Program-made: the position numbers and the translations under genes
From: Orbicella franksi
Taxonomy: Eukaryota
Direction: 5' to 3'
DNA length: 64,000 bases
Assembly: GCA_964199315.1 (NCBI GenBank)
Contig: OZ116699.1
Coordinates: forward strand, 32,984,001-33,048,000
The notes under the pieces: model-generated
Database searches by the model: none
Told to the model about the DNA's origin: nothing
What the model saw: only the letters and a program-made list of their open reading frames with translations
Part shown: positions 1 through 63,573 of the stretch, piece by piece
How the letters are laid out: each line of letters opens with the position of its first letter
Numbering within the stretch: position 1 is the stretch's first letter

Positions 1-847
1 GCGCGTGTTTTTCGCACATTCAGTTTCTGTTAGAGAACAAGTTATTTTGTATGCCTGCGTTGTTACCGGAAATAGAGACATTTCGCCTTATTGTCCTTCT
101 TTTTATGATGGCACAGACAGTGATTTTGTGGTGGAACAATTATCGCGCGGTTCAGTTCATGTAGCTAATGCAAAGCGCGAAACATGGCACACGAAAAAAT
201 AGGGGAGAGGCGTGGCACCAGTTCACACCATTCACTGAATTCACGCTTCTGGGTTATAGTTCGATGACGAAATGAGCGGTAAAAAATTATTCCACAATTA
301 TTTTTCTTAAACAGTTAAATCCTTGCTTCTTTGACTTGCCCCAGGGAATGTAATTTTCAACAATGTAACATCAGTTAAAATCAAAGACATTTCATTGAAT
401 TCTCTCATGAATGAGCTATTTTTGTGAACATAGTTCTTGATCTAGATCTTACATTGAGGGGCCCGATAGTATCACCAGTTTTGTATATTATTATGTGTCC
501 GTGGCTGTGTGGGTATTTGGATGCATGTGTGTGTGTGTGTGGACGGGGGGAGGACGCCGGTATAAGAGGGATTGTGCAGTATGTTACATTTTCTAAAACA
601 TATCATTTTTCAGGTGTAAAATTAACTGCGTGAACTATAAGAAGCACAGCTAAAGATGCTGCAAACGTTACCCGATGTCATGGACTTGTACCCAAGAAAA
701 GATGAGCAAATTTGTTGATGAAATCACGAGATTAAGTTTGTGAATCTTTTATGCTGATCGTCCAGTGTATATTTATGACATTACACTGATCTGATTGATA
801 CATTTTGTTAACGAGTTAACGAGTAATGATGCTGTTAATAGCAATAC

Positions 848-3605
848 TTTTACTGTGAACGGCCTTTAACATTCCAACAATGCCGGGGTCTTTGCTGCGA
901 AACTTTGCACTTAACTGTGTGAAACTTTTACGGTGAACGACCTATAACATCCCAACAATGCCGGGGTCTTTGCTGCGAATGTTTGCACTTAACTGTGTGA
1001 AACTTTTACGGTGAACGGCCTATAACATCCCAACAATGCCGGGGTCTTTGCTGCGAAACTTTGCACTTAACTGTGTGAAACTTTTACGGTGAACGGCCTG
1101 TAACATCCCAACAATGCCGGGGTCTTTGCTACGAAACTTTGCACTTAACTGTGTGAAACTTTTACGGTGAACGGCCTATAACATCCCAACAATGCCGGGG
1201 TCTTTGCTACGAAACTTTGCACTTAACTGTGTGAAACTTTTACGGTGAACGGCCTATAACATCCCAACAATGCCGGGGTCTTTGCTGCGAATGTTTGCAC
1301 TTAACTGTGTGAAACTTTTACGGTGAACGGCCTGTAACATCCCAACAATGCCGGGGTCTTTGCTGCGAATGTTTGCACTTAACTGTGTGAAACTTTTACG
1401 GTGAACGACCTATAACATCCCAACAATGCCGGGGTCTTTGCTGCGAAACTTTGCACTTAACTGTGTGAAACTTTTACGGTGAACGGCCTATAACATCCCA
1501 ACAATGCCGGGGTCTTTGCTGCGAAACTTTGCACTTAACTGTGTGAAACTTTTACGGTGAACGGCCTATAACATCCCAACAATGCCGGGGTCTTTGCTGC
1601 GAAACTTTGCACTTAACTGTGTGAAACTTTTACGGTGAACGGCCTGTAACATCCCAACAATGCCGGGGTCTTTGCTACGAAACTTTGCACTTAACTGTGT
1701 GAAACTTTTACGGTGAACGGCCTGTAACATCCCAACAATGCCGGGGTCTTTGCTACGAAACTTTGCACTTAACTGTGTGAAACTTTTACGGTGAACGGCC
1801 TATAACATCCCAACAATGCCGGGGTCTTTGCTGCGAATGTTTGCACTTAACTGTGTGAAACTTTTACGGTGAACGGCCTGTAACATCCCAACAATGCCGG
1901 GGTCTTTGCTGCGAATGTTTGCACTTAACTGTGTGAAACTTTTACGGTGAACGGCCTATAACATCCCAACAATGCCGGGGTCTTTGCTGCGAAACTTTGC
2001 ACTTAACTGTGTGAAACTTTTACGGTGAACGGCCTGTAACATCCCAACAATGCCGGGGTCTTTGCTGCGAAACTTTGCACTTAACTGTGTGAAACTTTTA
2101 CGGTGAACGGCCTGTAACATCCTAACAATGCCGGGGTCTTTGCTGCGAATGTTTGCACTTAACTGTGTGAAACTTTTACGGTGAACGGCCTGTAACATCC
2201 CAACAATGCCGGGGTCTTTGCTACGAAACTTTGCACTTAACTGTGTGAAACTTTTACGGTGAACGGCCTATAACATCCCAACAATGCCGGGGTCTTTGCT
2301 GCGAAACTTTGCACTTAACTGTGTGAAACTTTTACGGTGAACGGCCTGTAACATCCCAACAATGCCGGGGTCTTTGCTGCGAAACTTTGCACTTAACTGT
2401 GTGAAACTTTTACGGTGAACGGCCTGTAACATCCTAACAATGCCGGGGTCTTTGCTGCGAATGTTTGCACTTAACTGTGTGAAACTTTTACGGTGAACGG
2501 CCTGTAACATCCCAACAATGCCGGGGTCTTTGCTACGAAACTTTGCACTTAACTGTGTGAAACTTTTACGGTGAACGGCCTATAACATCCCAACAATGCC
2601 GGGGTCTTTGCTGCGAAACTTTGCACTTAACTGTGTGAAACTTTTACGGTGAACGGCCTGTAACATCCCAACAATGCCGGGGTCTTTGCTGCGAAACTTT
2701 GCACTTAACTGTGTGAAACTTTTACGGTGAACGGCCTGTAACATCCTAACAATGCCGGGGTCTTTGCTGCGAATGTTTGCACTTAACTGTGTGAAACTTT
2801 TACGGTGAACGGCCTGTAACATCCCAACAATGCCGGGGTCTTTGCTACGAAACTTTGCACTTAACTGTGTGAAACTTTTACGGTGAACGGCCTATAACAT
2901 CCCAACAATGCCGGGGTCTTTGCTGCGAATGTTTGCACTTAACTGTGTGAAACTTTTACGGTGAACGGCCTATAACATCCCAACAATGCCGGGGTCTTTG
3001 CTGCGAAACTTTGCACTTAACTGTGTGAAACTTTTACGGTGAACGGCCTATAACATCCCAACAATGCCGGGGTCTTTGCTGCGAAACTTTGCACTTAACT
3101 GTGTGAAACTTTTACGGTGAACGGCCTATAACATCCCAACAATGCCGGGGTCTTTGCTGCGAAACTTTGCACTTAACTGTGTGAAACTTTTACGGTGAAC
3201 GGCCTGTAACATCCCAACAATACCGGGGTCTTTGCTGCGAAACTTTGCACTTAACTGTGTGAAACTTTTACGGTGAACGGCCTGTAACATCCTAACAATG
3301 CCGGGGTCTTTGCTGCGAATGTTTGCACTTAACTGTGTGAAACTTTTACGGTGAACGGCCTGTAACATCCCAACAATGCCGGGGTCTTTGCTACGAAACT
3401 TTGCACTTAACTGTGTGAAACTTTTACGGTGAACGGCCTATAACATCCCAACAATGCCGGGGTCTTTGCTGCGAATGTTTGCACTTAACTGTGTGAAACT
3501 TTTACGGTGAACGGCCTATAACATCCGAACAATGCTGGGGTCTTTGCTGTGAAACTTTGCCCTTAACTGTGTGAAACTTTTACGGTGAACGGCTTTAAAC
3601 ATCCC
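848..3605. repeat. 78-bp tandem minisatellite, about 35 copies
   Basis: The unit ttttacggtgaacggcctataacatcccaacaatgccggggtctttgctgcgaaactttgcacttaactgtgtgaaac repeats head-to-tail. Only a few sites vary (tata/tgta, gctg/gcta, aaact/aatgt, ccca/ccta). The terminal copies are degenerate. Confidence 0.98.
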
Positions 3606-18604: not shown

Positions 18605-21600
18605 TCATTGAGCTTTAAGGAGATCTTTCAGTGAGTTTTTAAAAATGAATAATTTTTTTGCCACCCTTTCTCTTTTTTTCTTTTGGTGTTGCATGCGCTC
18701 ATTTGCTTTGGTCTCGGCTGCTTCCAAAGACTCAAAGACCGAAGTGAATTTCCTGTCTGCTGTTTGCGTCAGCTCTTCCAGGTTCTCGTGTGCCCTTTTT
18801 AAAAGTGAACTTTGCGATTGTTGGTCTTCCAAACCTGGTCCATCTTTTTCGTTCAGATGGCTTATTTCTTTCTCTCTGATGGGCTCTAGCACCGGTTTAT
18901 CACATCGATCCGGCACACCTTGTTCTGGGGAGCTGAGGGAGTTGCCCGCATATCCAGCGTCCACGAAATCTACCGCCTCATCGCGCGCCAGTTGATCAGG
19001 GTCATTAATTAAACTTTCAAAGTGTCCCAGCTCTTCCAAAACTAAATGATTAAGTTTTTCGAACTCTATGTCTGCATTGTCAAGCTCTCCTTTTACTCGC
19101 TCAACAATTTCGTCAACCCTTTTCCAGTTTGAAGTCATCTTTCCTGTCATGCTGTCTGTTGTTGCTTTAATCGTCCTGATCAGATGGGCATCATCGTTCG
19201 GAGATGGACACAACTATAAACATATACAAACAGAACGTGTCAATTGATAGCCATACAAAAAAGGCAATGGTATAGTACTGATCTATATGGCTTGAAGCCT
19301 TACCTCTATAACTCCTTAAAAAGGCAGAACCAGCAAGAGTTGTTGACATAATGATGTTGCGAGTAAATATAGAATTTACAATGTGATAATCGATTTTCTT
19401 TGCCTTTCCTCGCGGTATTGTCCAAAAGAAACAGAAAACAGAAACACTCGTGAACGTTTGGAAGAACTCTAAAAAGTCTTGGGACTTGTATCCTTACAGC
19501 ATTTCTCGTTCTCCCAAACTTCCACTCGTATTTCTATTTAAAAATTAGATTATGCCCTTTCGATTCCTCTATAAGAAACAGAGAACCTTTCCGTGTTCCT
19601 ATCAATTTCGTTGGCATACCAATGGAAAATAATGTTGTCAAAAATATGGTTGGCTGAGCTATCGTACACTATCAGAAGCACACAAGGTGATATGCTTCTG
19701 ACACTATACAAAAATTAGACTACGAGCCCGAGTTTTCCATGGACGAATAGTCATCAGACCTTTTGATCGGTCAGATCAGTCCTTTAAGCCGTCATGTACT
19801 AACCTTGGCTAGCACTCTTATTCCTGTGTGTCCCATGCCTATGAATGGGTACAGCGATTTTGCGGCCGGATTATACTCGATTAAAATCTTATCCTGAGTG
19901 ATCTGTTTGCCGTTTAAAGTGAACTTAATAGGCACTTTGTCATCTTCCAACTCGTTAAACATGACTGTGCAGCCGATCAGATCTCCTCTGTAAGCCATGG
20001 CGCCTGTGCAAAAGAAAAAGATCGACAGTCAGTGTCGCGTAGTGCGATCACCACACTGACCAACAACTACAAAAATGAGAACTGTGTTTCCGCCAAAAAC
20101 TTTTACATCAACATGGCGACTAAAAAAACCCAACACACACAAAAACACGAGGTCTCGATTCACGTCACTATCTCTGCATCTGACCACAATTCCAGATACG
20201 TGAAGTGCACAAAGCTGAACTAAAGGTTATTAAACTAGATCAATGTCTTTATAGTCGCGACAGTCAATGTCCGTCACAATAGTTATGGGAGATATAGAGC
20301 GTTTTCACTCACGAGACCATGCAGCAGCCATGTGAATTTATTGGAACAAAAGAAAGCAGCTCCAACAGGATATGTTTGAGACACCAACATGGCCGCCGTT
20401 TCATTGTTTTGGAACACCAATATGGCTGCCACGATGTCATGTAAGAACACACTATTGTGTCTTCAAGTGTATGGCAGCGTGTTTGAGAAACTCAACGAGA
20501 ATTTGTTACATTTTATGGTGTTGGACACGTGTATGTGCTCTGGAGTGTGCAATGCGTGTACCGGTATGAAACACAAGTGTAGCAGCTCTCATAAGCTTAT
20601 AATTCTTTTGCATGTTAGCAGCTGTTATTGTTTTGGGGCTGGAGACATTGTTTCTGTTGTTCGTTCAATCGTTCTATCAAGAGTATCAAGCCATTCATGT
20701 GAGACCTTTAGAGAGCTGCTCCCTTACCGATATGAAAAAGTTCCGCACGCTTAGCCAACGGGGAGCTGGGCACATGTAAGTTTCGTGGAGGTCGACAAAT
20801 TTTTACCACGTGAAAATGTCCGTGTAGGTTTAATAGCACGTTTTCACTCACGTGGCCAGCATTCATACAAATTTATTGGAGCAAAATAAAGCGTAAAGAG
20901 TTCAACTCCCACATGATTGGTTTGGTACACCAATATGGCCGCTGTTTCATTGTTTTTGAACACCAATATGGCTGCCGTGACGTCATGTAAAACGCTCTAT
21001 ATGTGAGGAAGCGCTGCCTGGACAAGACTGACTAATTCATGTTGGAATATTTAAACGCTTGTAATGGGACAACTTTGTTATGTCAAAGTTCTACTTTTTT
21101 CCGAGGCCTGGAGGAATAAAGCAAAAGAATCACATTTAGGTCGAGGAATGAAAAAATATTTTTGTATTCCATTAAGTCTCGGTGCCAAGTTAGAATTTAG
21201 CACATCGATACTGGCAAATTTTGAATTCCTGCTGAATTCTTAACCTCCGATAAGTATGTTTAACAAAAAAGCAAAACACGATAACGGAGTGAGGACATTC
21301 CTATTTTCGTTTTGCAAGTTCTTTTAAAATGTTAGAATAGTAATATTTTATGGACTTTCAACCCTTAGTTTAGTTGAACGAAAAATATATTTTTGATTTG
21401 TTTATTTTAGCAGTGTCTATATTATTTTAACAGTGTGTATAGTTTGCCATAGTCAGCTCTTATTCCCACTGTTTACCTTCATCTTCCTTCCCGGCAAGGT
21501 TAACAGGCTTAAATGGTCCCAATATTTTGCCTTCATCGACAAGACACCCCACCGTTCTTTTTAACTGTCCCGGCATGGCGTGGTTTCCGTAATCCTTCCA

Positions 21601-24600
21601 AACCACTCCCACTCCAAGACACCTTTGCTTTCCTATTTCCTGAATAAGAACCTTTAAGAGTGGACGAAAGAATAAAATTTATGTCACGCTATCAAAAGAC
21701 AAAGTAGATATAAAGATGATCATGTATACTAAACGTCCTTGATGCCATAGGTGTTGTTGTTGTTGTTGTTTTCCTATGTTGTTTGTGCTGATGATGTTGT
21801 TGATGGAAATGATTATCATGACTTGTGTTTATTTCACTGTCTCCTCCACAGGCGTTTCTTTATTGTTTTCTTAGCGCAAGGGGGGATTGGGATATTTTTG
21901 ATAATCGCGCGGGGGACTGAGGACGAGGTAGTTTATTTTACCGACCCCGACTTTAATACAATTTCCTTGCATGACACATTGGACAGGTGAAATCATTGAC
22001 CAGTGAAAATGGCTACAGTATTTCAAATCATGCTGGAACGTCATGTGAAAGGTCTGCTTTCGAAAATGAAGTCTTAACTGTATCAGTCTGGCCTTGAGAC
22101 TGGTTTCATCTTACAAATACAGTGGAACCCAGCCTTACGGCCACCAGTTCATATGGCCACCTTGTCATTATGGCAACTTTATTCTGGTTCAAACAAAAGC
22201 TCAGTCAGTCCCGTGATTTTCTTGTATAAAGAACCCTTTTAACACAGCCATTCCATTATTGTGGTCCGTTGGTGACCGGATTCACTGTACTAGTAAGCAA
22301 GATGTGATTGACTAGCCACCTGGGTTATAATGCACTGTTAAAGAGATTTCACTCATACGCACCTCAAGATGGGGAAATTCTGGAGAAAAGGGCACGAGAT
22401 ATCTTGCGCCATGGCATTCGTCTGATTCACCATGGCAGGTGTCGCAGAAGTTTCCTCCTTCACAAACCAGGAGAGAGCCTTCTATTCTAATGCCTTGACT
22501 CTGCCATGCCTAAAGAAAAGAAAGAGTTGAACCACTTGTCTATATCCATAGAAGGTTTAATGTGGCCCTCTGGGGGCTTTTAAGACACTCCCCCAGTAAC
22601 TCATTGAGTATTAAGGCTACGAAAATGAACCTTAGACAACCTGTACCACGTCCACGAACATTTTCGTTGATACTATTAACACGGAGTTGTGAGGACTTAT
22701 GACGTAGTAATGATGCCATCCTAAAAGACGCCACAATGGATCGTTGAGTTTAGGAAAACCAATAAACAGGCTCAAAAATAGTAAAAAATAATAAAGATTT
22801 TCTTGGAGGTAAAAGTGCATTTTCGGCTGACCTTTGGACCAGTAGGTAGCATTCCTTGATCAGGCACATGCGTTGTGAAGGTCCTGTGAACAATCTGATT
22901 GAGCAGTTCCCGGTTCCCCTCGGTTTCTCGAATTAATTGGTCCATCTTTCTGTCATCTGACGTCAAAAATGAAGAAAAAAAGCATTACTGCCGTAGCTGA
23001 AGCCAAAACTCTTAGAGATGACTAAAAGTGTCTCAGTAAGGAAATGAGCCGGAGTAAAAGAAAGCTTTAAGTTTGCGAAGTAAATTTTTGTGCTGATGAC
23101 AGTAAAAGCAAAGGCTGTTTAATTAGTTTCGCATGAAAGGCGAGACAAAAGGACATAAAGTAATCTTAGGAAAGAAACAAAATTGCATAAAGCCTGCCAG
23201 TTTCCCTGTGCGATCAAACCGCTATGGATTTGAGTCGCGAAAACAGTTTCTTTATAAATTTTAAAAGCGAGTTATGCAGGTTTTATGATCTTCCAATAAA
23301 TAGTCTTACCAGTAAGAGGAAAAGAATTTCCATAAGTTGCAAAATATGTTTGCAGAAGATTTTGAACAACCGCATTCAGAAATTTGTTCTGTTGAGTAAA
23401 AAGAACCAAGATCACAAACAAAAAGCCATTGTGTGGGTCTCTAAATATTAAGTAATAGGAATTGTCGCGCTGTCGGATAAATCGTCTGTTGCAAGCACGA
23501 GAAACGTAAGGGGCAATCGAGACTTTACGTGCTTTCAAGACTTTTCAATTGTAAGAAGCTTTCCCTGCTGTTTGCACTAGGTTATGTGGAGAGGAAGCGT
23601 CTGCTTTCATTTCATGTATAAAATACAAACACGTCAACAAACCTATTGAAGACGACTATAGACAGCCACGGTTCAGGGTGCGCTTTACATGAATGAATTT
23701 TACAAACATGTAGTCACTGGAAAAGTTGAAAATTTCCATGGACATGTCAATTTTAATTTACAGTATGTAAATCTTGATTTACATTCTTTGTAAATTACAA
23801 TTTACATGTTAGGGTTTTGTAAAATAAAATTACAGGAAATTTACAGCTTTTAGTACAGCATGTAAATGTTCTGTAAATAGTGATTTACATTGTCTTTGTC
23901 GAGAATGATCATTTGAAGAACATGTAAAAACCTGTAAAATATTTTACGCACTTTTACAGTATCTGCCTTTGTAAAAAACATGTAAATTGCTTTGCTAAAC
24001 CACGTGAGAAACGTGTAAATAATTCAACCGAATGCTGTAAAAAGTCTGGAAATGTTATGTTTGTAGCCCTGTAAAAACCATGTAAATGGAAAAAGGAGGC
24101 CTTTAAGAAACATGTAAAAACCATAAATGAAAAAAGGGGGCCTGTAAGAAACATGTAAAAACAATGTAAATGAAAGAAAGGGAGCCGGTAAGAAACATGT
24201 AAAAATCATGTAAATGGAAAACCTAGAAGTTGCACGGGTGCAGTGAGGGGTTGTAAATAATGAATACACTGCGAACATACACGGGCCTTGGCATCATTGT
24301 CATATTCTTGTCCTCTACAGCAAGCCATGCACTTGACTCCCACGCAAAGATTTGAGATGAGATTAAGAGGAACTGGGATGGGATGATAGCTGCTGTATGT
24401 CTGTATCGTGATAGCTTTCCTGAACGACCATTCCTTGTAAGCGTTGTCCTAAGCCAAAATTATTGAGCGAAAAAAACACCCTTATATTAGTAGAATAGAA
24501 TTGCCCACAATAAGAGTTAATCGCCCTAAGTTATATTTACCTATTTTCGTCCTGGCACATTGATATTATTAAATATAAATACAAGTCTTATATTTCGCCC

Positions 24601-27600
24601 TTCATGTACCTGCATGGAGCACGAATGCGACTACGCGAAACAACATTTATATCGTATCTTTGTTTATTTTTAAGAGTGTGTCGACGAGAAAACCAGGCAG
24701 AACCAGGCAGGAGGCGATACAGCTCAAATCACCAATTGCGCTCAAACTTGGCACAAATTTTGGGTTTGGTGAGTAAATGACTGTGGAAAAACAGTAGGTC
24801 AAAATATTTGATTCCCATCAAGTTAGAGGGACCCCCTGCAAAAATGGCCATTTGACGCTTATTTATGCATATTTAATTAGCCATCTTTAGTTTAGTATTT
24901 CTACAAACTTGATGGGAATCAAATATTTTGACCTACTGTTTTGCCACAATCCTTCTTACCAAACCCAACCTTTGTGCCAAGTTTGAGCGAAATGATTTGA
25001 GCTGTATCACCTCCTGCCTGGTTTTCTCATGGACACACTTTAAATGTGGTAAACTGGAATAGAAATGTTTGTGAGTAAGTGATGCTGAAGAAATACAGTA
25101 AAAACCTGCATATAAGAACCTACTAGGTTTCTTCAAGTTAGCCTCCATAGGTTCTTATATAAATTTTGCTTAATGCGAAATTAGGTTCTTATATCAGGTT
25201 CTTAATTTTTGTTTAAAAAAACGACAACTTGTACTCATGGGTGTGGCCGTCATATTGAATCATTCGCAGGACAGTACTGTGGTCTTATAACTCTGCCAGT
25301 ATTCTAGCTTGCTTTTTTTTTACCTTTTATTGCATCGCCTGTGATGTACCGTATTATATTTGAAAAAACTTTATATTTTGAAAATGTGTATTGATATTTT
25401 AGCCTAGAATGGTTTTTATGTGAAGAGTGCTTAACTGGGGAATTTGTAGCCCAACAGGGTCTTAAATGTTAGGTTCTTATACGTGGGTTTTTACTGTATA
25501 ATCCTGTGGATAATGGAACGGGCTGATTTCAATTTTTATTACATGTGCAGAAGAAAGAGCCATTCTTTCCAGGTTAGGGGCTTTGCACACTTATTGACTT
25601 AGAAGCTGTTTGATCAGTCATGTATTGGAGATCACATTTGCATTGGACCAACCATACACTGGTTTTCACGAAGAAAAAAAAGACAGCCAAAACTTGTTAC
25701 CTTCACTCGCTGGTATGTGTTCGACAGGAGAGCTATCATCACGTTGACAAGGAGAACTACACCCCTGATAAGAAAGGCCCCATACAATAATTGAGCCAGC
25801 GTCACTGAGGCACTGTCGCCAGAGTCCAGAGGATCCAATTCCTCTATACCCAGCAGAGACCAGCAAAGATGTTTAAACAACGCCCACCAACTTAAAGAGA
25901 GAAATTGACGTTTTGAAAACATTAGAATTATAAAATTTAATCGAAAGTTCCAAAAAGCTGGACGTACAGCAGGAGGGTAGCTTTGCACATCCTGTGAGAA
26001 GGACCCATCCCTTGATCAGCAAGCTCAACAATTTAGGCTGTCTTTTCAATACTTAATCTTTCTTTTATTATATGTATACATACTCATTATCATTCTCTCC
26101 CGTAACATTTGTAATGAAGAAGAAATTGAAGATGTCTCTGACGAAACATGTCTGTTAAAATGAAAACCGTCGTTTTATTTCTAAACCAAATTGATAGTTA
26201 TGCGTTGCCGAGCCTAGCTTAAGTAATAAGCAGGAGGATCTAACTTACCAGGCTATCCCAGAGGTATTGCAGACCCTGAAATATAAACCAGGTATCCCAG
26301 TAAGTAATTTAGACTAGTTTGCCCATCTTTTTGTGGCCACACAGTAGCCTGGGTGGTTCTTATAGGAAAAGGTCAGGGATGCTCGTCAGAAAATTGGAGT
26401 TTACCAAGGAGATGAATCTGGGTGTGGTTTGAGCTTTATTCGGATCCCTAAAAGAGACCACATAAATCCGAAATGACAGCGTTTTTCTAAGTATTTCTTT
26501 CGATACACCCTAAAAGAGATATGACGGCTAAAAATAGTGGCGTTTTGTCCTTACACCCTAAGCCTTGAAATACTCCTGTAAGCGAGAGGACGAACATCCC
26601 CGACCTTTTCATATGGAGTCCCTTCGTGCATAGAAGTGGTCGTTTTCGACTTACGGTCAGGTCAACTATGTGGAGGAGATTATATTTCTTTTGCATGAAC
26701 ATGTCCATAATTAGGTAAACCACAGGACACGCCAAAAAGTTCCAAAAGTCACCACATCCCTACATGCACTTGCTACCGTCCGAAAATCGCAATGAAAATT
26801 TTTAATGTTGTTTCAAAAATAACTGGCCTCCCAGCCCCTCGAGTCTTTCTACCTCCCTAATTTAGGCAAAGGAAAAGGTTGTCATTACTTTCGAAACTAA
26901 AAGGTGTTTGCTTGACACAAAATTCAACGCCGATATCAATATAAATCAAGGTCACTCAAATACGACTGATCAAGCGACTAAAGCATGTTAAAATAAGTCA
27001 CTATTTTCAAACCGTTGTGTCATACTCACAGGTTATCTTTATAGCTTTCCTGGGCAATGTACGACTTTTCTGCCATATACACCTTTGTTATGGCGATTGA
27101 GAAAGCCAAAATGGTCGCCACGAACTGCCAAAATATCGTAGCAATGTCACCAATGAACTGGAACAAAGTTATTTGAATGGTACCAATCTCTTGAATGGTC
27201 TCCATGACATGACCAAACGCCCTAAGTGTCAAGAACATGGTGTTGAGGCCGTACAGAAAACTGGCTATGACAAGAGGTCGGTTGTTGGTCACTGACGCAG
27301 ACGTGGCCCATGTCAACATTCTCAGCAGAATGGTGATCAAGTAGATCACTAGAGTAATGGAATTCAGAATGTTCCATCTATCGCTGAAAGGAAGCAGCAA
27401 AAGAGAAAATTAATGAATATAATTTGACAGCATACCATTCCGAATTGAGATAGGAAATGGCCTCAGAAACAGGCTTTCCATTCCAAAACAGGGTCACGCC
27501 TACGGTTTCTGTTCCCGCAGTACTAATGCTTAGCTCGAGATTTCTGGCTTTGATTTCTGGCTTTGATTTGACGAGGAACAGCATATTTTGTTGTAAATGA

Positions 27601-30600
27601 CACAATTATGTATTTCCTGCCTGCCGACAGCGATCGAAGAGCGAGTTGTCGAAGGCCGTGGGTGACCCAGTTTTGGCGCCAAATTAAACGTTTGAAGACA
27701 AAATGTTCAAATTTTCCCCTTTGTAAATCTGATATGTTTTGTTATTATAAATCCCTTTTCTTAAATAATGAATGTTTTGTCTAGTGAGAAACGGTGCCCG
27801 ACTTCAATGCCTTTCTGACATCAGGCCGACTGGCACACAAGTTTGCCGCGGTTATTGTTTCAAGGTGCATGACCTGATCACGTGAGAGTCGAAAGTTAAA
27901 GTTAAGTGAGTTTTGTTTGCCCTAGGGAGTTAATTAGTGAGTTTTGACCCATGATACGTGACACGTTCTCCTCCAATCAGAAACCGTACTTAAGTTGAAA
28001 GGTATAATTAAGTGATTTGATCGTTCACGTTTCTGACTGAGTAAGCTTGATCAATCAGTTCGATTTTTATGTTCTACGATTTTCATGACCAATCTCATTA
28101 AATACGAATTACACAAGTGCGTGCTGTGGAAGTTTATTTCGCCCAACAAAAGAAAGTTGGACTTCATCATGAGATCACTGCAGCATCTTGTGAAAACTCC
28201 ACACAGAGCTACAAAGGAGAGCTGGGATGAACTTTCAAAATAAACCTTGACGAGAATGATAAAAATACTGGTTTAATGAGACTACTCACTAGTGGAGAAC
28301 TGTTTATCAAGGAGGGGGAGAGGGGTGTTTTATCCATCATTGGCAGAACACGTGTTGCTGCTGATTCTTTTTCGTTTTTTTAAGAAAAAGCTACTTCCAC
28401 AATACCTTAGGTATTTTCCACATATCTTTGCAAACATAGTTGATCTTGATACTCGACAGCTTTCTTCATCTTCTTTACCTTCTCCATTCTCACCACCCCT
28501 GATTTCATTCTGTGCGCCTTGCTCTTCATTTTTATTGCACCTTGTATATTTGTTCCCCATCTGCTTCTTAATCACGATGCCTCTTCCCTCATCTACTTTG
28601 ACGTTCTGAAACTGTTTGCTCTCCATCAGTATTCGACCCATAAAGAAAATCAGAATGACCCACTCTAGACCGCTGAACGGAATGACCGAGGGCGAGAGAC
28701 ACAAGGCAAAGTGCAGGCCAAGAAGGATGAGATAACTCAGTGCCTCACGGACGAATATGAAGTAAGGTGTCGTGAAATACTCGTGGTAGCTCTCTGCGAT
28801 AAAGTTAAATAAACCAGTTAAATGATTGTTCAACAAGCTTGGAATTTCCTTTTGAATGACTCCTTTTTATTTCGTCGAAATAAAGGAAGATGCAATAAAC
28901 AACTAACCGTACATATCTTTTCCTTGCAGGTCTGTTGAAAACAAACAAACAAAAAAACAGTAAAAACGAAATCAAAAGGTCTGTGGTAAGGCAATTTTTG
29001 GAGGGAGGAAGGGGCGTACGACTTGCTCAGAGTCGCTCTTCGGAGCACGTGACAAATGAGGTCACAACCAACAAGCCTTCATAGAATGTTTCTTCATTAG
29101 AATATCTTCCAACGTGTAATTTCATGATACTCAATGTTTCAATTTGAAGTAAAAACTAATGGTAAATTAAAGCGCCCGACGTTTCGACCGAGCTTCAGTC
29201 ATTGTCAAGTTAAAAAGTGAAGATAAAAATTTTGCATGAGTATAAATATAAAACAAACAAGTAAAAGTATGTAAGATATGAAAATGTAAAAGAGGGTGTT
29301 AAGAACAATAAAATTCATGCAAGAATAACGTAATCAAAAATGAATTTTTAACGACGAAACGATGTGCTCCTCGACCTAGTTCCCACTTGTTTTTGCTCAT
29401 GTGTATAACCTCCTTAATTTCAGACGCCAGGGCTATGATGGCCATTTCCAAATACCCGTTAACAAAATACTTGCGATTATGTTAAATTGCTTTTCATTTT
29501 ATCATTACCCGTTCCCGCGGTCGATCAGCTAAAAAGCACTCTTCATAGCCACGTAATTGTTGACGTCATCGCACACCGTATGCAAAAAAGTTTTTGCAAT
29601 CAGTGTTTCAACCCGGTGTATGCCGGGTCTTTATATCAACAAAGTTATTGGGCATTTGAACTTTTTCAGGTGCAAGTAATGCTTTGAAAGTTCTTATAAT
29701 AATTAAGGATTGTTTTAATTATCGATGGGTTTCCACTAAAATTTTACCGCTGGGAAGACAATTTTGGGAAAAGAAACTAGGCTGAGAAATTCTGTTCAGA
29801 TTGTTAATGCCTCTTCAAGGCCCTTATCGACCTACATCAAGAACAAACAACCTCCCCAGCGATAAATATCACAGGGTTACGTTATTGCTGTACCGTGCCA
29901 AATCCGTGTGGAGACTGTCTCTGGTTTTTCGTATTCTCCAAAGTGGATGATGTCTAGCTTATTATCGGTGATAGTCTCTAATTCTCGGATATTGACGTGA
30001 GGTCCAACGGCAACCGGGAGTAGCTTGATGTCCTTCATGGCTTTTACTTGATTCTCTACCAGGCCCCTCTCATGTTTCGTACTTGTCTTGTGATCCGTGA
30101 AGAATATTGCTACCTGCCAAAAACTAATTTGTAAGTTTTATCGGAGCTCCAACGGCCCGAAGGACCGCCAAGCGAAGCCCATACCCATATAGCAAAGAAA
30201 AGCAAACCCATGAATTGATTTTCTCATGATTATCATGGCTAGCGGTATTGCTCGTGGGCGCGCACGCACGACGACGGCGACGAAGTCACCCAAGATGGCG
30301 GCCATACTCCAGCTAATGGGTTGACAGAGACATGAACCCTCGATTTAACGCGTTCCTCTTTGATATTGAAAATCCATGTTATGGTCAATTGATGCCTGTC
30401 AAAACAAGATATCCGCTGACCAGTATCATGTTACCATATCCCGGGCTCAAGTTTAGAGCTCATCGAGGTCAAGTGTGTTTTTTTTAATTTACCGCAGACC
30501 AAGAGCTGTTTTTTTATTGGATCGCGGGTTCATGTCAGGTTAACTTGTTGTAAACAGGTCCGGGTAGTTCGGAAGCCGGTTAACGCTAACCCACGATTGT

Positions 30601-33600
30601 TAAAGTTAACAGAAGTATAATTTTTTCTTGTATATAAATGCTTTTCACTGCTTTTGTTTTGTGTATTTTGAGGACCTTGAGATTATTCAAACTCAAAACA
30701 GGCCAAACAACATAAACGGAACACCTCCCCGTAAAGTTCCAAAACTCAAATCAAAATTCTCGCTTATCCTGGGTTAGCTTAATCGGGCTTTGAACAATCC
30801 GGCTCAGGAGCTCCGCTTTTAGGCTTGGTTAAATCTATATATTAGTGATACTTAAGACCTTATGGTACAGTTGAAAAGGAAACCATTGGTTCTTCTTCAA
30901 TTTGAAAAAAAATGCTTACAGCATACTAACTTCTTTTTAACTAATCACTGGTAGTTTCGCTTTTATGCCCTAGTCGCTATGGCAGTAACAATTTCTTTAA
31001 AATTTGAATTCTAAATTGACAACTTTAAAGAAATGCTATTCAGACGTACTCTCTTGGCGCAAACTTGCTATATTGTCTTCGAATGGTAATAAACAAATTT
31101 TTCCTGACCAACTTTAAGGAAACATGATAGGAGGAGCGATGTAATGTAGATCTGTAGGTGCTCTTAATAACAGTTTATCGAGGTTTACTCTAGTGTATTG
31201 TGTACTTGTGATTGTGAAAGGAAAAAAAGATAAATACAAAGCGAAGCTAAAAGCTGTCAAATTTTGCGACTTCATAAGGAATTTTTCTGGGAACAATTTC
31301 ATATGACATGCCGTTGCATATCCTGCGTCCGTGAACTATTCAAAGGCCAATATACAATATATATTTCATTTCCCTTAAGAAAACTGGGGCCTTAGGTGCC
31401 CTCTCCACCGAGGCAACTTTACTGAAGCCGAGGAGAAAACTGAGCGGTCCAGTCTGCCGTAATCGTATTGAGGCAAAATTCCGATTTAGCCGACGATTTT
31501 CTTGAGCCCGGTCTAATCTCAGATCGAATGATTGGCCCATTATGCTTTAAGAAAAGGAAATTGCCAATATTGCATAGGTTATTAAATTAAATGCAATATC
31601 TGCATTTGATTCATGGCCTTTTTGAAAATCTATGTGATGACTGGATCGCACCGGCTGACCCACCGACCGATGTTTCAACTGATTGTAATTATTTTACGTA
31701 GTAAATAAAAACACAATGAAGGGGGCAATCCAAATTTATAATTAACTAGCAATCACAATTTGTTACCTTCTCTGACTTCTTTTTGGAGCTGCGAATTAGG
31801 AAATCAGCGTTCGTAAGGTCTTCATGAAGGGCAGGAATCTTTGTAGTTTCTCTCTTGAGTTCTAATTTGCCAATGTCACTCTTGGAGCACATTTTTCTTG
31901 GAGAGGAATCATCTCCGTGAATAACAACTTGATATCTGGTTTTGTCATCTCCATGTTTGTCGACGAATTCCTTTATGGATCTTTTCATCAGGTTGAAGGC
32001 TTTGTTCGCATTCTTCGAAGTTGCATTTATCAAAAAAGCAATCTCTATTCCTAAGTTGAAAGATGACGCACAGTGTTGTTTGAAGCAGTGGGAGGGCAAA
32101 GTTTACAACTCATGGTAGGAAATTTCACTTCATCATTTGCATGTACTATTTTCTTAACCAAAAGGGCGTCTCGGTAGTGAGCGTATGAAAACGAGCACTG
32201 AGCGCGAGGTCGACCTCGTTTATTTGCGCTTGACCCACCCCACCTCACTGCATTTGTTCAATTGCTTGCGTCTTCGTGAAACAGATCTAGACTAGGATAG
32301 ATCCCAGTACACGCTCAGTCAGGAGTAGGAACACTGGGGAAAGTTTTTTCTGGAAGCCTAAGTAACAGTTTTTCCGTTTTCAAAGTTAAAACGGTCGGTG
32401 AAAGAAATGAAAAATATGTTATTCCTTAATTGGACAACAGATGACCCAAGAAGACAGAAACATGGCACAAACATGTTTTCCGACAAACCCCGGTTTGAAA
32501 AGTATGCTTGATTCAGAATATGAATCTTTCATTATACCTTTGTCTTTCAGCTTGTTTTTGTTCCTGCGGTGCTTGACGTAAAACACAGCGAAAAGAAACG
32601 GAAACATCACTAAATCAAACAAGCACCAGATGTGCAGCAAAATCCACAGCCAGCCTTGCAGTGATAGCCATGAACATCTCTTCATTCTGCCAAACTTTCC
32701 CAGCCATTTATCACTCATCAAGTTGAAAATTACCGGATGTGCAAAAAACTGAGAAATCAATGAGAAAATTATGACTGTAGGAGCGGAAGGTTCATAAAGA
32801 ATGCATAGCACTTCTGCCATTTGCTTTTAGTCACCTAATTAATCTCGCAGCTCGTGTTTAACTTAAGTCTGTTGTTTTCTATGTAGTAAATGTTGCATTT
32901 TATGCGTGGTATGGATCACTGGTGCAAATATTGTTAGGGGAATATGAAGACGAAGTATAAAAGTAGAAATTTTAAAGAACAATAAGGAATGTAAGCCAAG
33001 TATACTTAGGAATGTATTGGGAGACGTGGTGAAGGTAGCACTATCGTGAAAGAATTAAAAAAACTTCAAGGTAAAGAACAGTTTATAACCGACTTAAATT
33101 GGCAAATGGGATTTATTTTCAATGATTTGAGCGAAGTTTGGAAGAAATGTCTTGTCAGGATGAAAAAAATTGGAAACAAATCGCTGTTTATGTCCGAATA
33201 AGGTCAGCTGTCTATTATGCACTGATAACAGACACATGCAAGAAGAGAAGCTTACGAACGAATAGGAACATTTAAAATCGATAATAGATAGTTTGAATTT
33301 AAGTAAGTTTTTCAAAGCTTCTATCTACGATTGATCTGTTCTACATGACCTACAAAGCCGCTTACTGTCTTTTGTTTCCTGTCAATCCCAGCACCCATTA
33401 GGTCATCTAAAGAATCCCCAAATACATGATGTGCTTCTGTGTTGGATTTCAGAGGATCGAGTAAACAAGAAGTAAACTCGTCCACTGAGCTAGCCATCTT
33501 CGCAAACTCTTCTGCCACGGGACCTTTCTCCTTTGCCAAACTGCGAAGCTTTGAATTCGCCTAAAAAACACATTGAATCTGTACAGGCCCGCAGACGATC

Positions 33601-46777: not shown

Positions 46778-48910
46778 TCAAGCTTTCTCTTCAGGAACAC
46801 TACTGGCCTGGTTGTCTGTTGGCTCAGGGCTAGTACCATTCATAGCACTATGAGGCTGCGTATCAGTTTTCTCGTCTTTCTCAGTCTCTGAATTTTCAGT
46901 GTTCAAATTTTCACCAGCATTTCCATTGACCACGGTCTTGTTTACACCTTTGTTCTTCATCTCTTGGTCCAATTTTTCTTCCGCCAGCTTTGCGGCAAGC
47001 ATCTCTTCGTATTCCTTTGCTAACTGCTTGCAAAATTTCTTGTGTGTTTGCCAATGCAGCTTTTGACATCTGACGCTACAGTAGCCAACCTATTGAGGAA
47101 TTGCATTCACCAGCCAGTTTTTATTGACAAGGACCGAGCAGGGATAAAATTGAGGGCCGGAAAAGACAGAATGCCTTGATGAGCTGATAAATATTTCTGA
47201 CAAATTCCACTTGCTCTAGAGATTGTAGGGCTCATGAGACGAGAATTGTCTGTGATCTTGGACAAGAGACTTTACTTCAATGAAAACTTATATGATGAAG
47301 ACTCCAACAGCGAAGACTTGCTGAAAAATGCTGGAAACCGTTATGAGCCACCTAACTCAATGAAGGGACGGGGGAGGGGAGAACCTTGCGATGGACCAAC
47401 ATCCCATCTAGAGTAGACAAACTCCTAATGAAGCCGGAGATAAGCCCCTGCCTTATGGGACACTAGGCTCAAGCTGACCATAATACATGTACCCAGAAGT
47501 ATAAAATTGCCTCGGGAGGATTCATCAATGGGGCAAAACGATAATTCCTAAGATGTTTTTTTTATTTAAGCGGTCCAAGTAAACCTCAGTCGGAGTAAAC
47601 CGATAACTGGGCGTTTTATTGCCGCTCTTGGAAGCTAAACAAAAGAAGATCACCAGCTGATTATATCTCTCATATTTGTTTTTTTACAATGTTTAAAAAT
47701 AGATTTTGTTTTGTTACGTGTATTAACGAAAGGCCAACAAAGACGACTCCGTGGACACTTTTTAGGGGGATCACTGTCGCGAAACGTCGAACCCGCCGGG
47801 AGAAATGAAAGGCGACTGGATTCGCAGGCAAGGAAATTCTCTAATGGATTATTAACGAAAACAAATCTATTCCCGGCGAAAAAGAGCCTAAATAGGCTAA
47901 CTATGGGTTGCAAACTAAGAGCACTTACCGTTTTACAAGCTGAGCACTTCTTCACATTTCGATTCTCGGTGCAAACCCCACAGCAATCACTAAAATCACC
48001 ACTGGAAAGAAAGTCAAACGACAAAAAAAAAAAGTCTGTTATAGTTATTATTAAATGTTCTTAACGTCGTTTACCTCAACTCCTCAGATATACGTGAATG
48101 AAAATTCCCCGAGGCGGCAGCTCGCCAGAGACTATAGCTACGGGCTTTTGAATGTGTTTCAGGATTGTAATTGGCACTGAAAATCATCCAAAATTGTTGT
48201 CAGTTTACAAATTATTACTATTAAGTACTGTTCAAGACGAGTAAAGTTCTCTGCATGACTGAGTCAAAGTCCGTGAGAAAAAGAATAACACCAAATATCT
48301 GGACACCCCATGATGCTCGAGATACAATGTATCTACTCAGCTCTAATGATTAGTACTTTTTATACAGGTATTTGGAGTTCAGTATCCGTCGACGTCATTT
48401 GATGACATGCCATACCAATCAAATTACTTTTCTTTATCGTTCTATCCTGACTTTAGAAACAACAAAACAAATTGACTAAGCTAAGGGAAAAGTCAAGACT
48501 GCTAACACGAATTAAGCTTAATGTTTTAAAATAGATTATATATAAGTGACCTACCAGCGGAGGCCGTTTATACTCTGAGTGAGTACAGTAAGAGCTGTTG
48601 GTTCACGCCCCTAAGAAAAAACAAATAATCAATCAAGGCTGTTCCAAAAGGAAAGGGCCAATCAAAGAATCAATCAAGGGCCCACGGTGTTCCATTGGGG
48701 GTTGTTTGGTAGATTTGAAAACGCTGAGGTTTTCTGGGGAGTGATGGAGAGTGATGAGGAAGGGAAGAGGTACATTAATGATTTCCTTTTTGGGGGGTTG
48801 GCGGGGGGAGGGATTTCAAAGCCCAGCCTTATACCACCTCCCCTTCTCTCCTTTTATTCAGATCCAGAACGGTGACAAGCAGATCATGTTTTTCCTTTAT
48901 CCATGTTGTA

Positions 48911-49285: not shown

Positions 49286-52200
49286 TTTAGTGAGGGAATC
49301 CAACTCGCCAAAGGCGGTTTTCAGTGGAGCCCTCCTAAATGAATATCACCTAAAAATGACATAAATGAGAGTTACCTAATAAATTACTACAAGCTAAAAT
49401 AAATAAGAGTAAAAGAGTTCGTATTAGTTAAAAAGTTAAAATTCTAAAGATTGAAATTAGCTAAAATCATTCAAAAAAGTTTTCAGTTTTGCTTTAAAAA
49501 TAGATAAAACACGTGTGTCTTTTAATTCACGCGGGAGTCTGTTCCAGTCCTTCGCTGCTTGATAAATGAACATTTGCTTGCCCCAGTTAGTGCGAGGGAG
49601 GGGCAAACGAAGATCGTTCAATTGTCTCGTATTGTGCGAGTGAACAGCTTGATTTCTAATGAAACTGAAGTCAAAATCTGTTGACCCAATTAAGCACTTA
49701 TGAATTGCGGTGCAACGATGAAAGAATCGCCTTAAAGCAAGTGGCTTGAAATCAAGGCTTTTCAAGGCTTGAGTTGACGAGCTTCGGATTGCAAGGCCCA
49801 ACAGTACTTTAGCAGCATTATTTTGAAGTACCTGCAGTTCTGACATTATGGTGAGATTGTTCTTGTCGCCCCAAACGAGGTCTCCATAATCAAAGAGTGG
49901 TAGGATTAAGGTGTTGTATAGGGTGACCCTGGCTTGAAATGGTAGTAGATTTCTAACTCTCTTGATTAGGCCTATCCTTTGATTAATCTTCTTACAAAGA
50001 CATTCGATGTGATCTGCCCAGGACATAGACTGATGAAGTGTTACGCCCAAATACTGGAATGATTCTGTTCTATCGATTATAGTACCCTTTATTTGAATAG
50101 ATATTTCCTGGATACGTTTCAGTTTGTGTGGACTGCCAAAGATGACAAAGTTGCATTTTGATAAATTAAGAGTCAGGAGATTTCTGGAGAACCATTCTGA
50201 CACTGTCTCTAAGTCAACATTGAGGTGACGTTGAAGATCAGTAAGATCTTTAGATGAGTAGTAAAGTACAGTATCATCAGCATAAAGAACAATATCACTT
50301 GCTAAAGGACAGTTCGGAAGATCATTCACATAAATCAAAAAAAGTAGCGGACCCAGAATACTGCCTTGGGGTACCCCAACGGGCATTTTAGCAGCTAAGA
50401 AGTGAGCATCTCCAACTGCTGTAATTTGTGACCTGTTCGTGAGATAGGATCTAAACCATTGGACAGTAGAGTCGGTAAGGCCAATGTTTATTAGCTTCTG
50501 CAGTAGTAGATGATGGTCTACCGTGTCGAAGGCCTTAGACAGGTCCAGAAATACAGCACCAGTAAACCTACCAGTGTCCATATTCTGGAGAATATTATCT
50601 GTGAAGTGAGCCAAGGCTGTTCCAGTTGATAACTTCGGTCTGAACCCAAACTGTTTGGATGTAATGATCTTATTGTTTGTGAGATAAGCGTATAGTTGGA
50701 TGTGTACAGCTTTTTCAAGTATTTTGCTCACCGTCGGCAGGACTGTTATGGGCCTATAATTGTTTGCATCGCAGCGATCACCTTTCTTGAACTACGCTGA
50801 CACTTTTCCAAATTTCCAGAGAGAAGGAAAGGTGCGAGATTCAAGAGATTGATTAAACAATCTAGTAAGGCTGCCACTAACTACTGAGGCTGAATCTTTC
50901 AAAAGGCGCGCGCTGACGTTGTCGAGTCCGATTTCTTTATTAGTTTTCAGCTGTTTAAGTTGACGGAGAACGAAGTCTTCTGCAATTGGCTCAAGAACAA
51001 ATTTCTGAAGTGAATGGAAGTTTTCCGGAGACTTTGAGAAAAACAAAGAGCTGTAAGACTTGTTTTGATCCATAAGAGCATGCTATAGACCTGAGTAAAT
51101 CCAAATCTACTATAGCAACAAAATCACAAATCGCAACTTCAAAACAACAAACTAAAGGTAACTCACTATTTTATGAAGCCATCAATTCCATCTTTCCCAT
51201 CCAGCCCTTCGTGCCAGCGTGCACACTTTTTTAACGTAAATGCAAGATAGTGTATCTTCATAGCTAGCACTTCATTCATCTCAGATGACTTGATATTTGA
51301 CTCTACTATAAGTTCCATAACTTTCACCAGACTTTTGTAGTTTGTAACAAGTTCTAAGTTGTCCTGTAGATACATTGCTATCTGGTGATCAAGGAAAAGA
51401 GACCTTAGTTAAGATTAATTTTCCTTAAAAAGAAGAAACATGCTGGAGCTTGCTAGGGTAGAGATGGGTGTTTCTCAAGCCAAGGAGCAGAGTATAATAA
51501 TAGGCAACTGACTGTTAACATGTTAATAATTATTATGCAAAGATCAATTTGTATTTTGTGACAAACTTACTGAAAAAATACCATAACTGATAACTGTACA
51601 TGTAGTCCTTCAAAGGACTACATGTGTACACATAATTTAAGGACAATGTGTTAAAGAGAGTGCACAGTGAAAATGGGTTTTTGAGCAGAGGTGAATTATT
51701 ACCTTCACGGGGCTTAATTTTTGACTGACAGCATATTTGTGTAGCATGGGAACCAAGGCTGTAGATAGCTTGGGTTCTTTTTCTAAACCTGTCAGGAAAG
51801 ACATCATTATAAACTTGTTTGAACACTTAAGATGATTTCGGCAGAACATTTGAGCAATAATGACAAAAATTAAGTTACCAAAAAAGCCTCACAGCGTGGT
51901 AATATTTTTACAGCTAAGAAGAACTTATGGAGACTTACACTCTCAAGCTGACCCTATGAGAGTAAATTGAACTTGAAGTTATCCATACTTCAATTAAAAC
52001 AGTAGTTTTGCGTTACTTAAAAACACAATAACACGCTTTAGGCATTCTTACAGGGTTGACATTAACTTTCTTGAGAATGCTTGCCAATTTTAATCACGGG
52101 GTCACTTAGAAAAATGAAGTAAAGTGAGTTGTTTTAAATAGTATTCCAAAAGTTACTGTGCTGTGAGTGGATTTTTAGTAAAAAATATTTGCACTTATTG

Positions 52201-54998: not shown

Positions 54999-63573
<8,575 letters not shown>

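Follow-up and report, generated by a model that had tools for sequence, protein, structure and literature searches.

The locus and its channel gene

We analysed a stretch of 64,000 nucleotides (nt) from the coral Orbicella franksi (GenBank assembly GCA_964199315.1, contig OZ116699.1, positions 32,984,001 to 33,048,000), further called the window. The subject is an ion channel gene on its minus strand, predicted to encode a divergent cation channel of the TRPC-like kind. A von Willebrand factor A (vWA) domain, referred to below as the module, appears to have been inserted into this channel by exon shuffling, between a hydrophobic element preceding the first transmembrane helix (the pre-S1 elbow) and that helix itself (S1). 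The module is predicted to lie on the cytoplasmic side of the membrane, and its metal-ion-dependent adhesion site (MIDAS) is degenerate. All coordinates are window positions, and the exons are collected in Table 1.

The original prediction described the module as two exons, here a and b, bounded by phase-1 introns on both sides. Both exons hold: they are open in the expected frames, reproduce the peptides quoted for them, have GT..AG borders (acceptor AG at 32052-32051 and 30115-30114, donor GT at 31766-31765 and 29893-29892) and are joined in RNA. The phase-1 introns on both sides were confirmed as well, with phase 0 between exons a and b. The count of exons does not stand, as a third, 24-nt exon lies between 29894 and 28793. 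The borders of this micro-exon (28931-28908) are an acceptor cag and a donor gt, and it encodes the peptide LQGKDMY plus split codons. The three exons of the module (284, 220 and 24 nt) add up to 528 nt, or 176 codons, and its introns have the phases 1, 0, 1 and 1.

Table 1. Exons of the channel gene, in the order of transcription
Feature	Position	Strand	Description
pre-S1 exon	32538..32748	minus	motif F-x-x-H-P-V...K-W-x-G, hydrophobic hairpin, basic tail KHRRNKNKLKDK; ends in phase 1
vWA exon a	31767..32050	minus	284 nt; enters in phase 1, leaves in phase 0; both joints in RNA contigs
vWA exon b	29894..30113	minus	220 nt; enters in phase 0, leaves in phase 1; joint 31767/30113 in RNA
micro-exon	28908..28931	minus	24 nt, phase 1 to 1; encodes (D)LQGKDMY(E); joint 28908/28793 in runs X7 and X2
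S1-S2 exon	28406..28793	minus	enters in phase 1; pre-S1 helix YFTTPYFIFVR, S1, S2, long charged S2-S3 loop
S3-S4-S5 exon	27029..27383	minus	channel core; joint 28406/27383 in RNA
pore helix and S6	25698..25892	minus	part of a larger exon

RNA contigs and reads from four public runs were aligned to positions 27000-32999 (6000 letters). The runs were X7, coral single-cell cDNA; X2, a metatranscriptome; and X23 and X24, poly-A runs of raw reads. The X7 and X2 contigs contain the joints 32538/32050, 31767/30113, 28908/28793 and 28406/27383, all of them GT..AG and on the minus strand. Contig no. 10 of X7 continues from the joint 31767/30113 into the micro-exon and the S1 exon, contig no. 1 of X2 covers exon 27029..27383 with zero differences, and a contig breaks at 32748. 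The contigs have 0-4 letters per exon (about 220-390 letters) differing from the window, with 99% identity, while the tandem copy of the gene is diverged from it by about 5%; hence the contigs derive from the window gene and not from the paralogue. When the six consecutive exons from 32748 to 27029 are joined, they form an open frame of 1482 nt.

It had also been suggested that the module, being symmetric in phase, could be skipped in frame. This is arithmetically possible, but a skipping isoform is not among the observed joints: no joint from 32538 to 28793 or 28931 was reported in the four runs, and contigs drop rare forms and give no isoform ratios. Searches of the protein representatives, the word index and the clusters returned only exon-sized genomic open frames with intron read-through, and no spliced product.

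Two other elements of the gene region deserve mention. The intron between vWA exons a and b carries a dispersed, transcribed repeat (30600-30850) that is not part of the gene; its contig depth is very high, and its loose ends run into many other sequences. The S2-S3 loop (28406-28600, minus strand) has a charged insert of about 65 residues, consisting of Lys, Glu, Gly and Asn, in the window gene and its tandem copy; it is shorter or missing in most paralogues.

Evidence for a vWA domain

The claim that the module is a vWA domain is supported by profiles, whereas Pfam applied to single exons remains below its threshold. When compared with a hidden Markov model of Pfam-verified vWA domains, the spliced module scored 34.1 bits, colinear over both exons, against a maximum of 7.3 in 1000 shuffles. 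A profile of ten spliced modules was aligned by hhalign to the verified vWA set with the probability 99.6% (E-value 6e-25, 142 columns); the alignment spans query positions 2-152 on template positions 1-157 and includes both exon a and exon b.

The predicted elements of the domain are distributed over the three exons. Exon a contributes the first strand with N-A-T-S-K, the first helix, the second and third strands, and the conserved helix P-A-L-H-x-D-L. In exon b, the fourth strand with T-D-H is followed by the fifth, LLPVAVG; then, after a helix, come the sixth strand, DIIHF, and the beginning of the last helix. The micro-exon supplies the end of that last helix, its LQGK being homologous to LEGK of single-exon vWA units found elsewhere in the genome.

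A phmmer search with exon a against 1.84 billion protein representatives yielded matches to 37 proteins, mostly exon-sized fragments from coral contigs. The long matches were P0003, P0006 and P0030, with E-values of PF00092 from 2e-93 to 5e-272; P0003 features seven vWA domains plus EGF and discoidin domains. The vWA domains verified in these proteins were the source of the hidden Markov model. By language model, all neighbours of exon a fall within the vWA clan, but with scores below 0.9, and we consider them a lead only. The fold model of exon a shows, at low confidence, the order strand, helix, strand, strand, helix expected for vWA. When it was compared with the PDB by Foldseek, vWA domains made up about 40 of the top 50 matches, the best match having the E-value 0.08 and the TM-score 0.43. 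The model and the structure matches are consistent with vWA, without being a proof of it. Based on the profile alignments, we conclude that the spliced module encodes a predicted complete vWA domain of 176 residues.

The host channel

The matches to TRP channels were obtained with exon profiles built from paralogues and searched against the PDB; searches there with the pre-S1 and S3-S5 exons as single sequences gave no match. The S3-S5 profile identified TRPC4 and TRPC5, residues 432-540 (E-value 1e-5), and then TRPC6/3/1, TRPM2 and TRPM8. For the pore/S6 profile, constructed from 14 copies, the best match was TRPC3, residues 606-666 (E-value 4e-7), followed by NOMPC, Nanchung, TRPC6, TRPM4 and TRPC4/5, with 171 TRP chains after the TRPC3 match. 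The S1-S2 profile of 15 paralogues had its best match in the TRPM2 chanzyme, residues 795-855 (E-value 2e-4). Pfam on single exons retrieved Ion_trans for the pore/S6 exon (E-value 0.003) and almost nothing for the other channel exons. The predicted segments S1-S6, with the pore between S5 and S6, are colinear with solved TRP channels, and on this ground the gene is assigned to the TRP superfamily.

These matches identify the predicted host as a divergent TRPC-like cation channel gene, a TRP nearest to TRPC. The original prediction of a TRPC channel is thus retained in part: TRPC is nearest for S3-S5 and for the pore, whereas S1-S2 is nearest to TRPM2, so the gene is TRPC-like and not proven TRPC.

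Further exons of the channel gene lie downstream (minus strand, 19795-22945), and two of them, 22945-22736 and 21612-21376, are conserved in L050, a contig from another assembly. The downstream open stretches 19795-20028 and 21463-21678 have no Pfam match when taken singly.

The pre-S1 hairpin and the membrane side of the module

The pre-S1 exon encodes a hydrophobic hairpin of 30 residues (about 26 of them hydrophobic) with a central Asp and Pro. The net charges of its flanks are +4 and +5. The motif F-x-x-H-P-V...K-W-x-G of this exon is conserved in the alignment of 13 paralogues and has weak matches (E-values 4-8) in TRPM7, residues 732-758, and in the TRPM2 chanzyme, residues 712-735. In the chanzyme chain, this match precedes that of S1-S2 by about 60 residues (735 to 795). 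The position of the hairpin, its length, the charges of the flanks and the conservation in 13 paralogues fit a predicted elbow-like element. In the structure of TRPC4, the pre-S1 elbow is a part of the cytoplasmic domain, is only partly in the membrane, and forms a sterol/lipid pocket with S1 and S4 (PMC5951680).

Downstream of the module follow, in this order, the pre-S1 helix, S1, S2, S3, S4, S5, the pore and S6. The module itself contains no hydrophobic segment, the maximal Kyte-Doolittle mean over 19 residues being 0.61, and about 20 non-hydrophobic residues separate it from the start of S1. In TRP channels, S1 begins in the cytoplasm. Since no membrane segment is found between the module and S1, the module should be cytoplasmic, whatever the hairpin does. 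The cytoplasmic placement between the elbow and S1, proposed originally, is further supported by the colinearity of S1-S6 after the module and by the basic flanks of the hairpin.

The metal-ion site

The motif DxSxS after the first strand marks the metal-dependent vWA members and not the fold as such. At this position the window gene and its nearest copies have N-A-T-S-K, and N-[ATV]-T-S-[KEDRH] is the form in about 25 related copies. A second paralogue subclade has S-L-S-K-A, T-M-S-R-D, N-A-I-G-K and H-T-G-G-N instead. No module copy has DxSxS, and the degeneracy of MIDAS, predicted from the window gene, proved to be common to all ten fully aligned copies. At the same time, the fourth-strand Asp, which occupies the position of the last Asp of MIDAS, is retained in ten of ten aligned copies (T-D-H, V-D-D, V-N-D, T-N-D). 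As for the Thr of MIDAS, expected some 70 residues beyond DxSxS, the hhalign and BLAST alignments place it about two residues apart.

One qualification is needed. The single-exon vWA units in multi-vWA genes of the same genome read I-S-A-T-S, I-S-A-N-S and similar, again with no DxSxS. As these units, the likely donors, already lack the motif, the degeneracy of the module would be inherited and not a consequence of its new location. Given that DxSxS is present neither in any copy of the module nor in the donors, the domain most likely works without a MIDAS metal.

Paralogues, other assemblies and the origin of the module

The S3-S5 exon occurs in the genome at least 22 times. We fetched and exon-mapped 16 paralogous loci, which makes 17 genes with the window gene. 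The three-exon module is present in eight of the 17: the window gene, a tandem copy of it at a distance of 74 kb, and six others. Paralogues lacking the module had been sought as a check of the insertion, and they exist, as seven genes that look complete are without it; a further two copies are truncated and carry a frameshift. L047 (C1:28.74 Mb) and L048 (C1:28.56 Mb), almost identical to each other, each duplicate part of the channel gene at C1:28.91 Mb; they have no pre-S1 or vWA exons and a frameshifted pore exon, and are probably pseudogenes.

In the tree constructed from the S1-S2 and S3-S5 exons, all eight module-bearing genes fall into one clade with 12 members, and a branch with support 100/98 divides this clade from a five-member clade without the module. 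The module-less gene at C2:25.58 Mb, which belongs to the vWA clade, retains the micro-exon-like sequence R-C-K-I-D-L-Y. The tree fits one putative gain of the module followed by a few losses. The micro-exon is conserved as x-x-G-K-D-x-Y/F in six copies (L033, L034, L038, L039, L049, L050) and, in a looser form, as VYEEDLY in L041; it is absent from the clade A paralogues.

Five contigs from other assemblies were considered: one from NCBI (GCA_044670265.1), two from ENA, and two from Tara Pacific coral metagenomes. In all five, as far as each extends, the pre-S1 exon is followed by vWA a and then by vWA b. L050 and L051 continue to S1-S2 and S3-S5 (L051 also to the pore), L053 continues to S1-S2, and L049 and L052 end before S1-S2. 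The identity of their vWA sequences to that of the window goes down to 37-46%. When the window gene is compared with L049, the NCBI contig, dN/dS is 0.16 for exon b and 0.18 for the pre-S1 exon; between the young tandem copies, it ranges from 0.14 to 0.56 over all exons. The motifs N-x-T-S, P-A-L-H-x-D-L, T-D-H and G-K-D-x-Y are kept in about 30 copies from several assemblies.

The module-less paralogues also indicate where the module has landed. All seven of those examined have a single phase-1 intron exactly at the site of the module. Aligned with single-exon vWA units at C3:33.0 Mb, the spliced module, micro-exon included, is covered over residues 1-172 of 175 and shows 31% identity. Each unit of this donor type forms one open frame, flanked by candidate acceptors and donors of phase 1; these borders are predicted. 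Within the module, the phase-0 intron after (E/K)-K is common to ten of ten aligned copies. The regions C3:33.00-33.08 Mb (L004, L005, L007, L008) and C11:14.42-14.45 Mb (L006) are dense arrays of single-exon vWA units, each of about 200 residues and none with DxSxS. The arrays at C3 and C11 are likely the donor family of the channel module.

The acquisition of the module by exon shuffling is therefore well supported at the level of sequence; the original claim to this effect has been strengthened by the phase-1 intron in the module-less paralogues and by the match to a single-exon vWA unit. In the proposed scenario, a phase 1-1 vWA exon of a matrix-type multi-vWA gene would have entered the channel gene at a phase-1 intron already present there. 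Inside the inserted exon, two introns would then have been gained, and the module would have been kept under purifying selection in one paralogue clade and in other coral assemblies, and lost again in a few copies.

Other features of the window

Outside the channel gene, the window contains a 78-bp satellite (846-3605; 35 copies, 96% match), whose minus strand is open as a 26-residue repeat, probably non-coding. Exons of a MYND zinc-finger gene (zf-MYND, E-value 6.5e-6) are found at 46781-48060 on the minus strand. Upstream of the channel gene, at 49460-50791 (minus), an open frame of 444 residues matches the reverse transcriptase family RVT_1 (E-value 5e-35) and represents a retroelement. The gene at 55436-62400 on the plus strand has a weak C2H2 zinc-finger-like piece (55436-55627) and a class I methyltransferase motif (60017-60451, with PrmA and Methyltransf matches), and looks like a protein arginine methyltransferase.

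Function of the module

Our preferred interpretation, to which we assign a probability of roughly 0.7, is that the gene encodes a TRPC-like channel with a shuffled-in cytoplasmic vWA domain, and that this domain is likely a metal-independent docking module that could affect anchoring or gating. In a channel tetramer, four vWA copies would be suspended below the membrane, next to the voltage-sensor-like bundle and to the lipid pocket formed by the elbow, S1 and S4. The module would act as a protein-docking domain that needs no MIDAS metal. Binding of a partner could anchor the channel or bias its gating, the site being also near the region of the TRP helix; this last step is tentative, and we would give it about one chance in three.

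Several observations weigh against this interpretation. Neither vWA exon alone reaches the Pfam cut-off: for exon a the PF00092 score is 13.9 bits where 23.8 would be needed, and exon b has no match. The model of exon a, which is a half-domain, is poor, with the mean predicted local distance difference test score (pLDDT) 60.5; the two halves paired as separate chains scored 0.23 (mark 0.34), which is no evidence either way. The homology of the hairpin to the TRPC/TRPM elbow relies on the weak matches (E-values 4-8) and on position. No TRP box was located: the sole match to W-K-F-x-R on this strand (19524) is far downstream, in an unrelated open stretch. Of the N-terminal domains, Pfam found neither ankyrin nor TRP_2 in two upstream open stretches. 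These two results and the preference of S1-S2 for TRPM are the reason why we describe the host as TRPC-like only. Finally, the poly-A reads of X23 and X24 are absent from the exons and all fall on the intronic repeat; given this, expression of the gene may be low or cell-type specific.

A more far-reaching version of the same idea is that a matrix vWA unit has turned into a cytoplasmic receptor, so that a cellular partner, or the C-terminal domain of the channel itself, gates the pore at the corner between the elbow and S1. We regard it as somewhat doubtful. If true, this way of gating a TRP would be without parallel in the channels studied, and the module would be a rare instance of a matrix-type domain working inside the cell.

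Otherwise, the module may be a tolerated passenger: a folded spacer that occupies the variable elbow-S1 loop, binds no particular partner and leaves gating unaffected. This seems unlikely, although a number of facts agree with it. Seven paralogues lack the module, and L035 and L036, members of the vWA clade, seem to have lost it. The spacing in the TRPM2 chanzyme (735 to 795) shows that the site tolerates extra residues, and dN/dS between the tandem copies is only 0.47-0.55 (0.14 to 0.56 for all exons of the pair). However, exon b has dN/dS of 0.16 in the comparison with the other assembly, as low as that of the pre-S1 exon, the family motifs are preserved in about 30 copies, and both the internal introns and the micro-exon are conserved.

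Rather improbable is a non-canonical metal site, in which Asn and Thr of N-x-T-S together with Asp of T-D-H would bind a metal and an acidic ligand in the manner of MIDAS. Indeed, N-x-T-S is almost invariant in one subclade (N8, T10 and S11 in at least 90%), and the fourth-strand Asp is present in ten of ten aligned copies. However, the fifth MIDAS position is occupied by Lys, Glu, Asp or His, and the motifs of the second subclade (S-L-S-K-A, T-M-S-R-D, N-A-I-G-K, H-T-G-G-N) diverge. Moreover, the position of the MIDAS Thr varies by about two residues between hhalign and BLAST, and the donor units have no DxSxS.

It is very improbable that the hairpin truly crosses the membrane as a helix and the vWA domain lies outside the cell, where most animal vWA domains are found. 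The hydrophobic segment is long enough for that (about 26 residues), the donor family is of matrix type (P0003 combines seven vWA with EGF and discoidin), and N-A-T is a glycosylation sequon. But the roughly 20 residues leading to S1 are non-hydrophobic, and the solved TRP channels, with which S1-S6 are colinear, have a cytoplasmic start of S1; an extracellular domain would require an extra helix between vWA and S1, and none is present. Both flanks of the hairpin are, in addition, strongly basic.

Lastly, it is hardly credible that the vWA exons come from another gene or a rare side transcript and are absent from the main channel mRNA: although the two poly-A runs have no reads on the exons and contigs give no isoform ratios, overlapping RNA contigs link pre-S1, vWA a, vWA b, the micro-exon, S1-S2 and S3-S5, no module-skipping joint was reported in the four runs, and the exon order is the same in paralogues and other assemblies.

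Comparison with known systems

Among known systems, the TRPC family (TRPC4/5, TRPC3/6) gives the best profile matches of S3-S5 and pore/S6. We know of no TRPC, solved or described, in which a folded domain separates the elbow from S1. The likeness to TRPC may extend to the hydrophobic pre-S1 element followed by the pre-S1 helix and S1, the TRPC elbow forming lipid pockets with S1 and S4 (PMC5951680). The coral channel differs from TRPC in that its S1-S2 region is closest to a TRPM2, and in that the two upstream open stretches have no ankyrin or TRP_2 match. TRPM, in turn, is similar in the pre-S1 motif, weakly aligned with TRPM7 and the TRPM2 chanzyme, and in S1-S2, aligned with chanzyme residues 795-855. 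In TRPM7, some 80 disordered residues are inserted at the elbow-S1 site. The TRPM inserts at this site are not known to be folded domains, unlike the coral insert, which is predicted to be a vWA domain. A melastatin homology region was not seen in the coral gene, though no search aimed at it was made.

With the multi-vWA matrix proteins (the arrays at C3:33.0 Mb and C11:14.4 Mb), the module shares an end-to-end alignment with 31% identity and the absence of DxSxS. The structure search with the exon a model ranked mussel PTMP1 and collagen VI N5 among its top matches. However, the matrix proteins, also including collagen VI and matrilins, are tandem arrays accompanied by extracellular-type domains such as EGF and discoidin, whereas the coral channel has a single unit, split by two introns and predicted to be on the cytoplasmic side of a channel subunit.

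Protein-binding vWA domains in the cytoplasm or nucleus, several of them with no working MIDAS, are reportedly known in copines, Rpn10, Ku70/80 and Sec23/24 (Whittaker and Hynes, 2002). By sequence, the coral module is nearest to the matrix-type units and not to these proteins. An association of vWA with ion channels is seen in the calcium-channel alpha2delta subunit and CLCA1, both of which are among the structure matches of exon a. These are separate extracellular proteins with a working MIDAS, whereas the coral vWA resides within the pore-forming subunit and is predicted to be intracellular. Searches of a full-text library retrieved no description of a TRP channel with a vWA domain, and such a channel is mentioned neither in a 2026 survey of the domains gained and lost by TRPM channels nor in a coral comparative-genomics paper.

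TRP channels usually diversify through attachments at the N- and C-termini. In the coral case, a folded domain would be situated inside the TRP core, adjoining the voltage-sensor-like bundle and the lipid pocket of the elbow, and a matrix-type domain would have moved to a cytoplasmic setting. The event offers a clean and datable case of exon shuffling, in which the likely donor family, the recipient intron with its phase, the later intron gains and the secondary losses are all visible. As close paralogues with and without the module coexist in one genome, they may serve as natural controls for its possible roles in gating, anchoring and trafficking of the channel.

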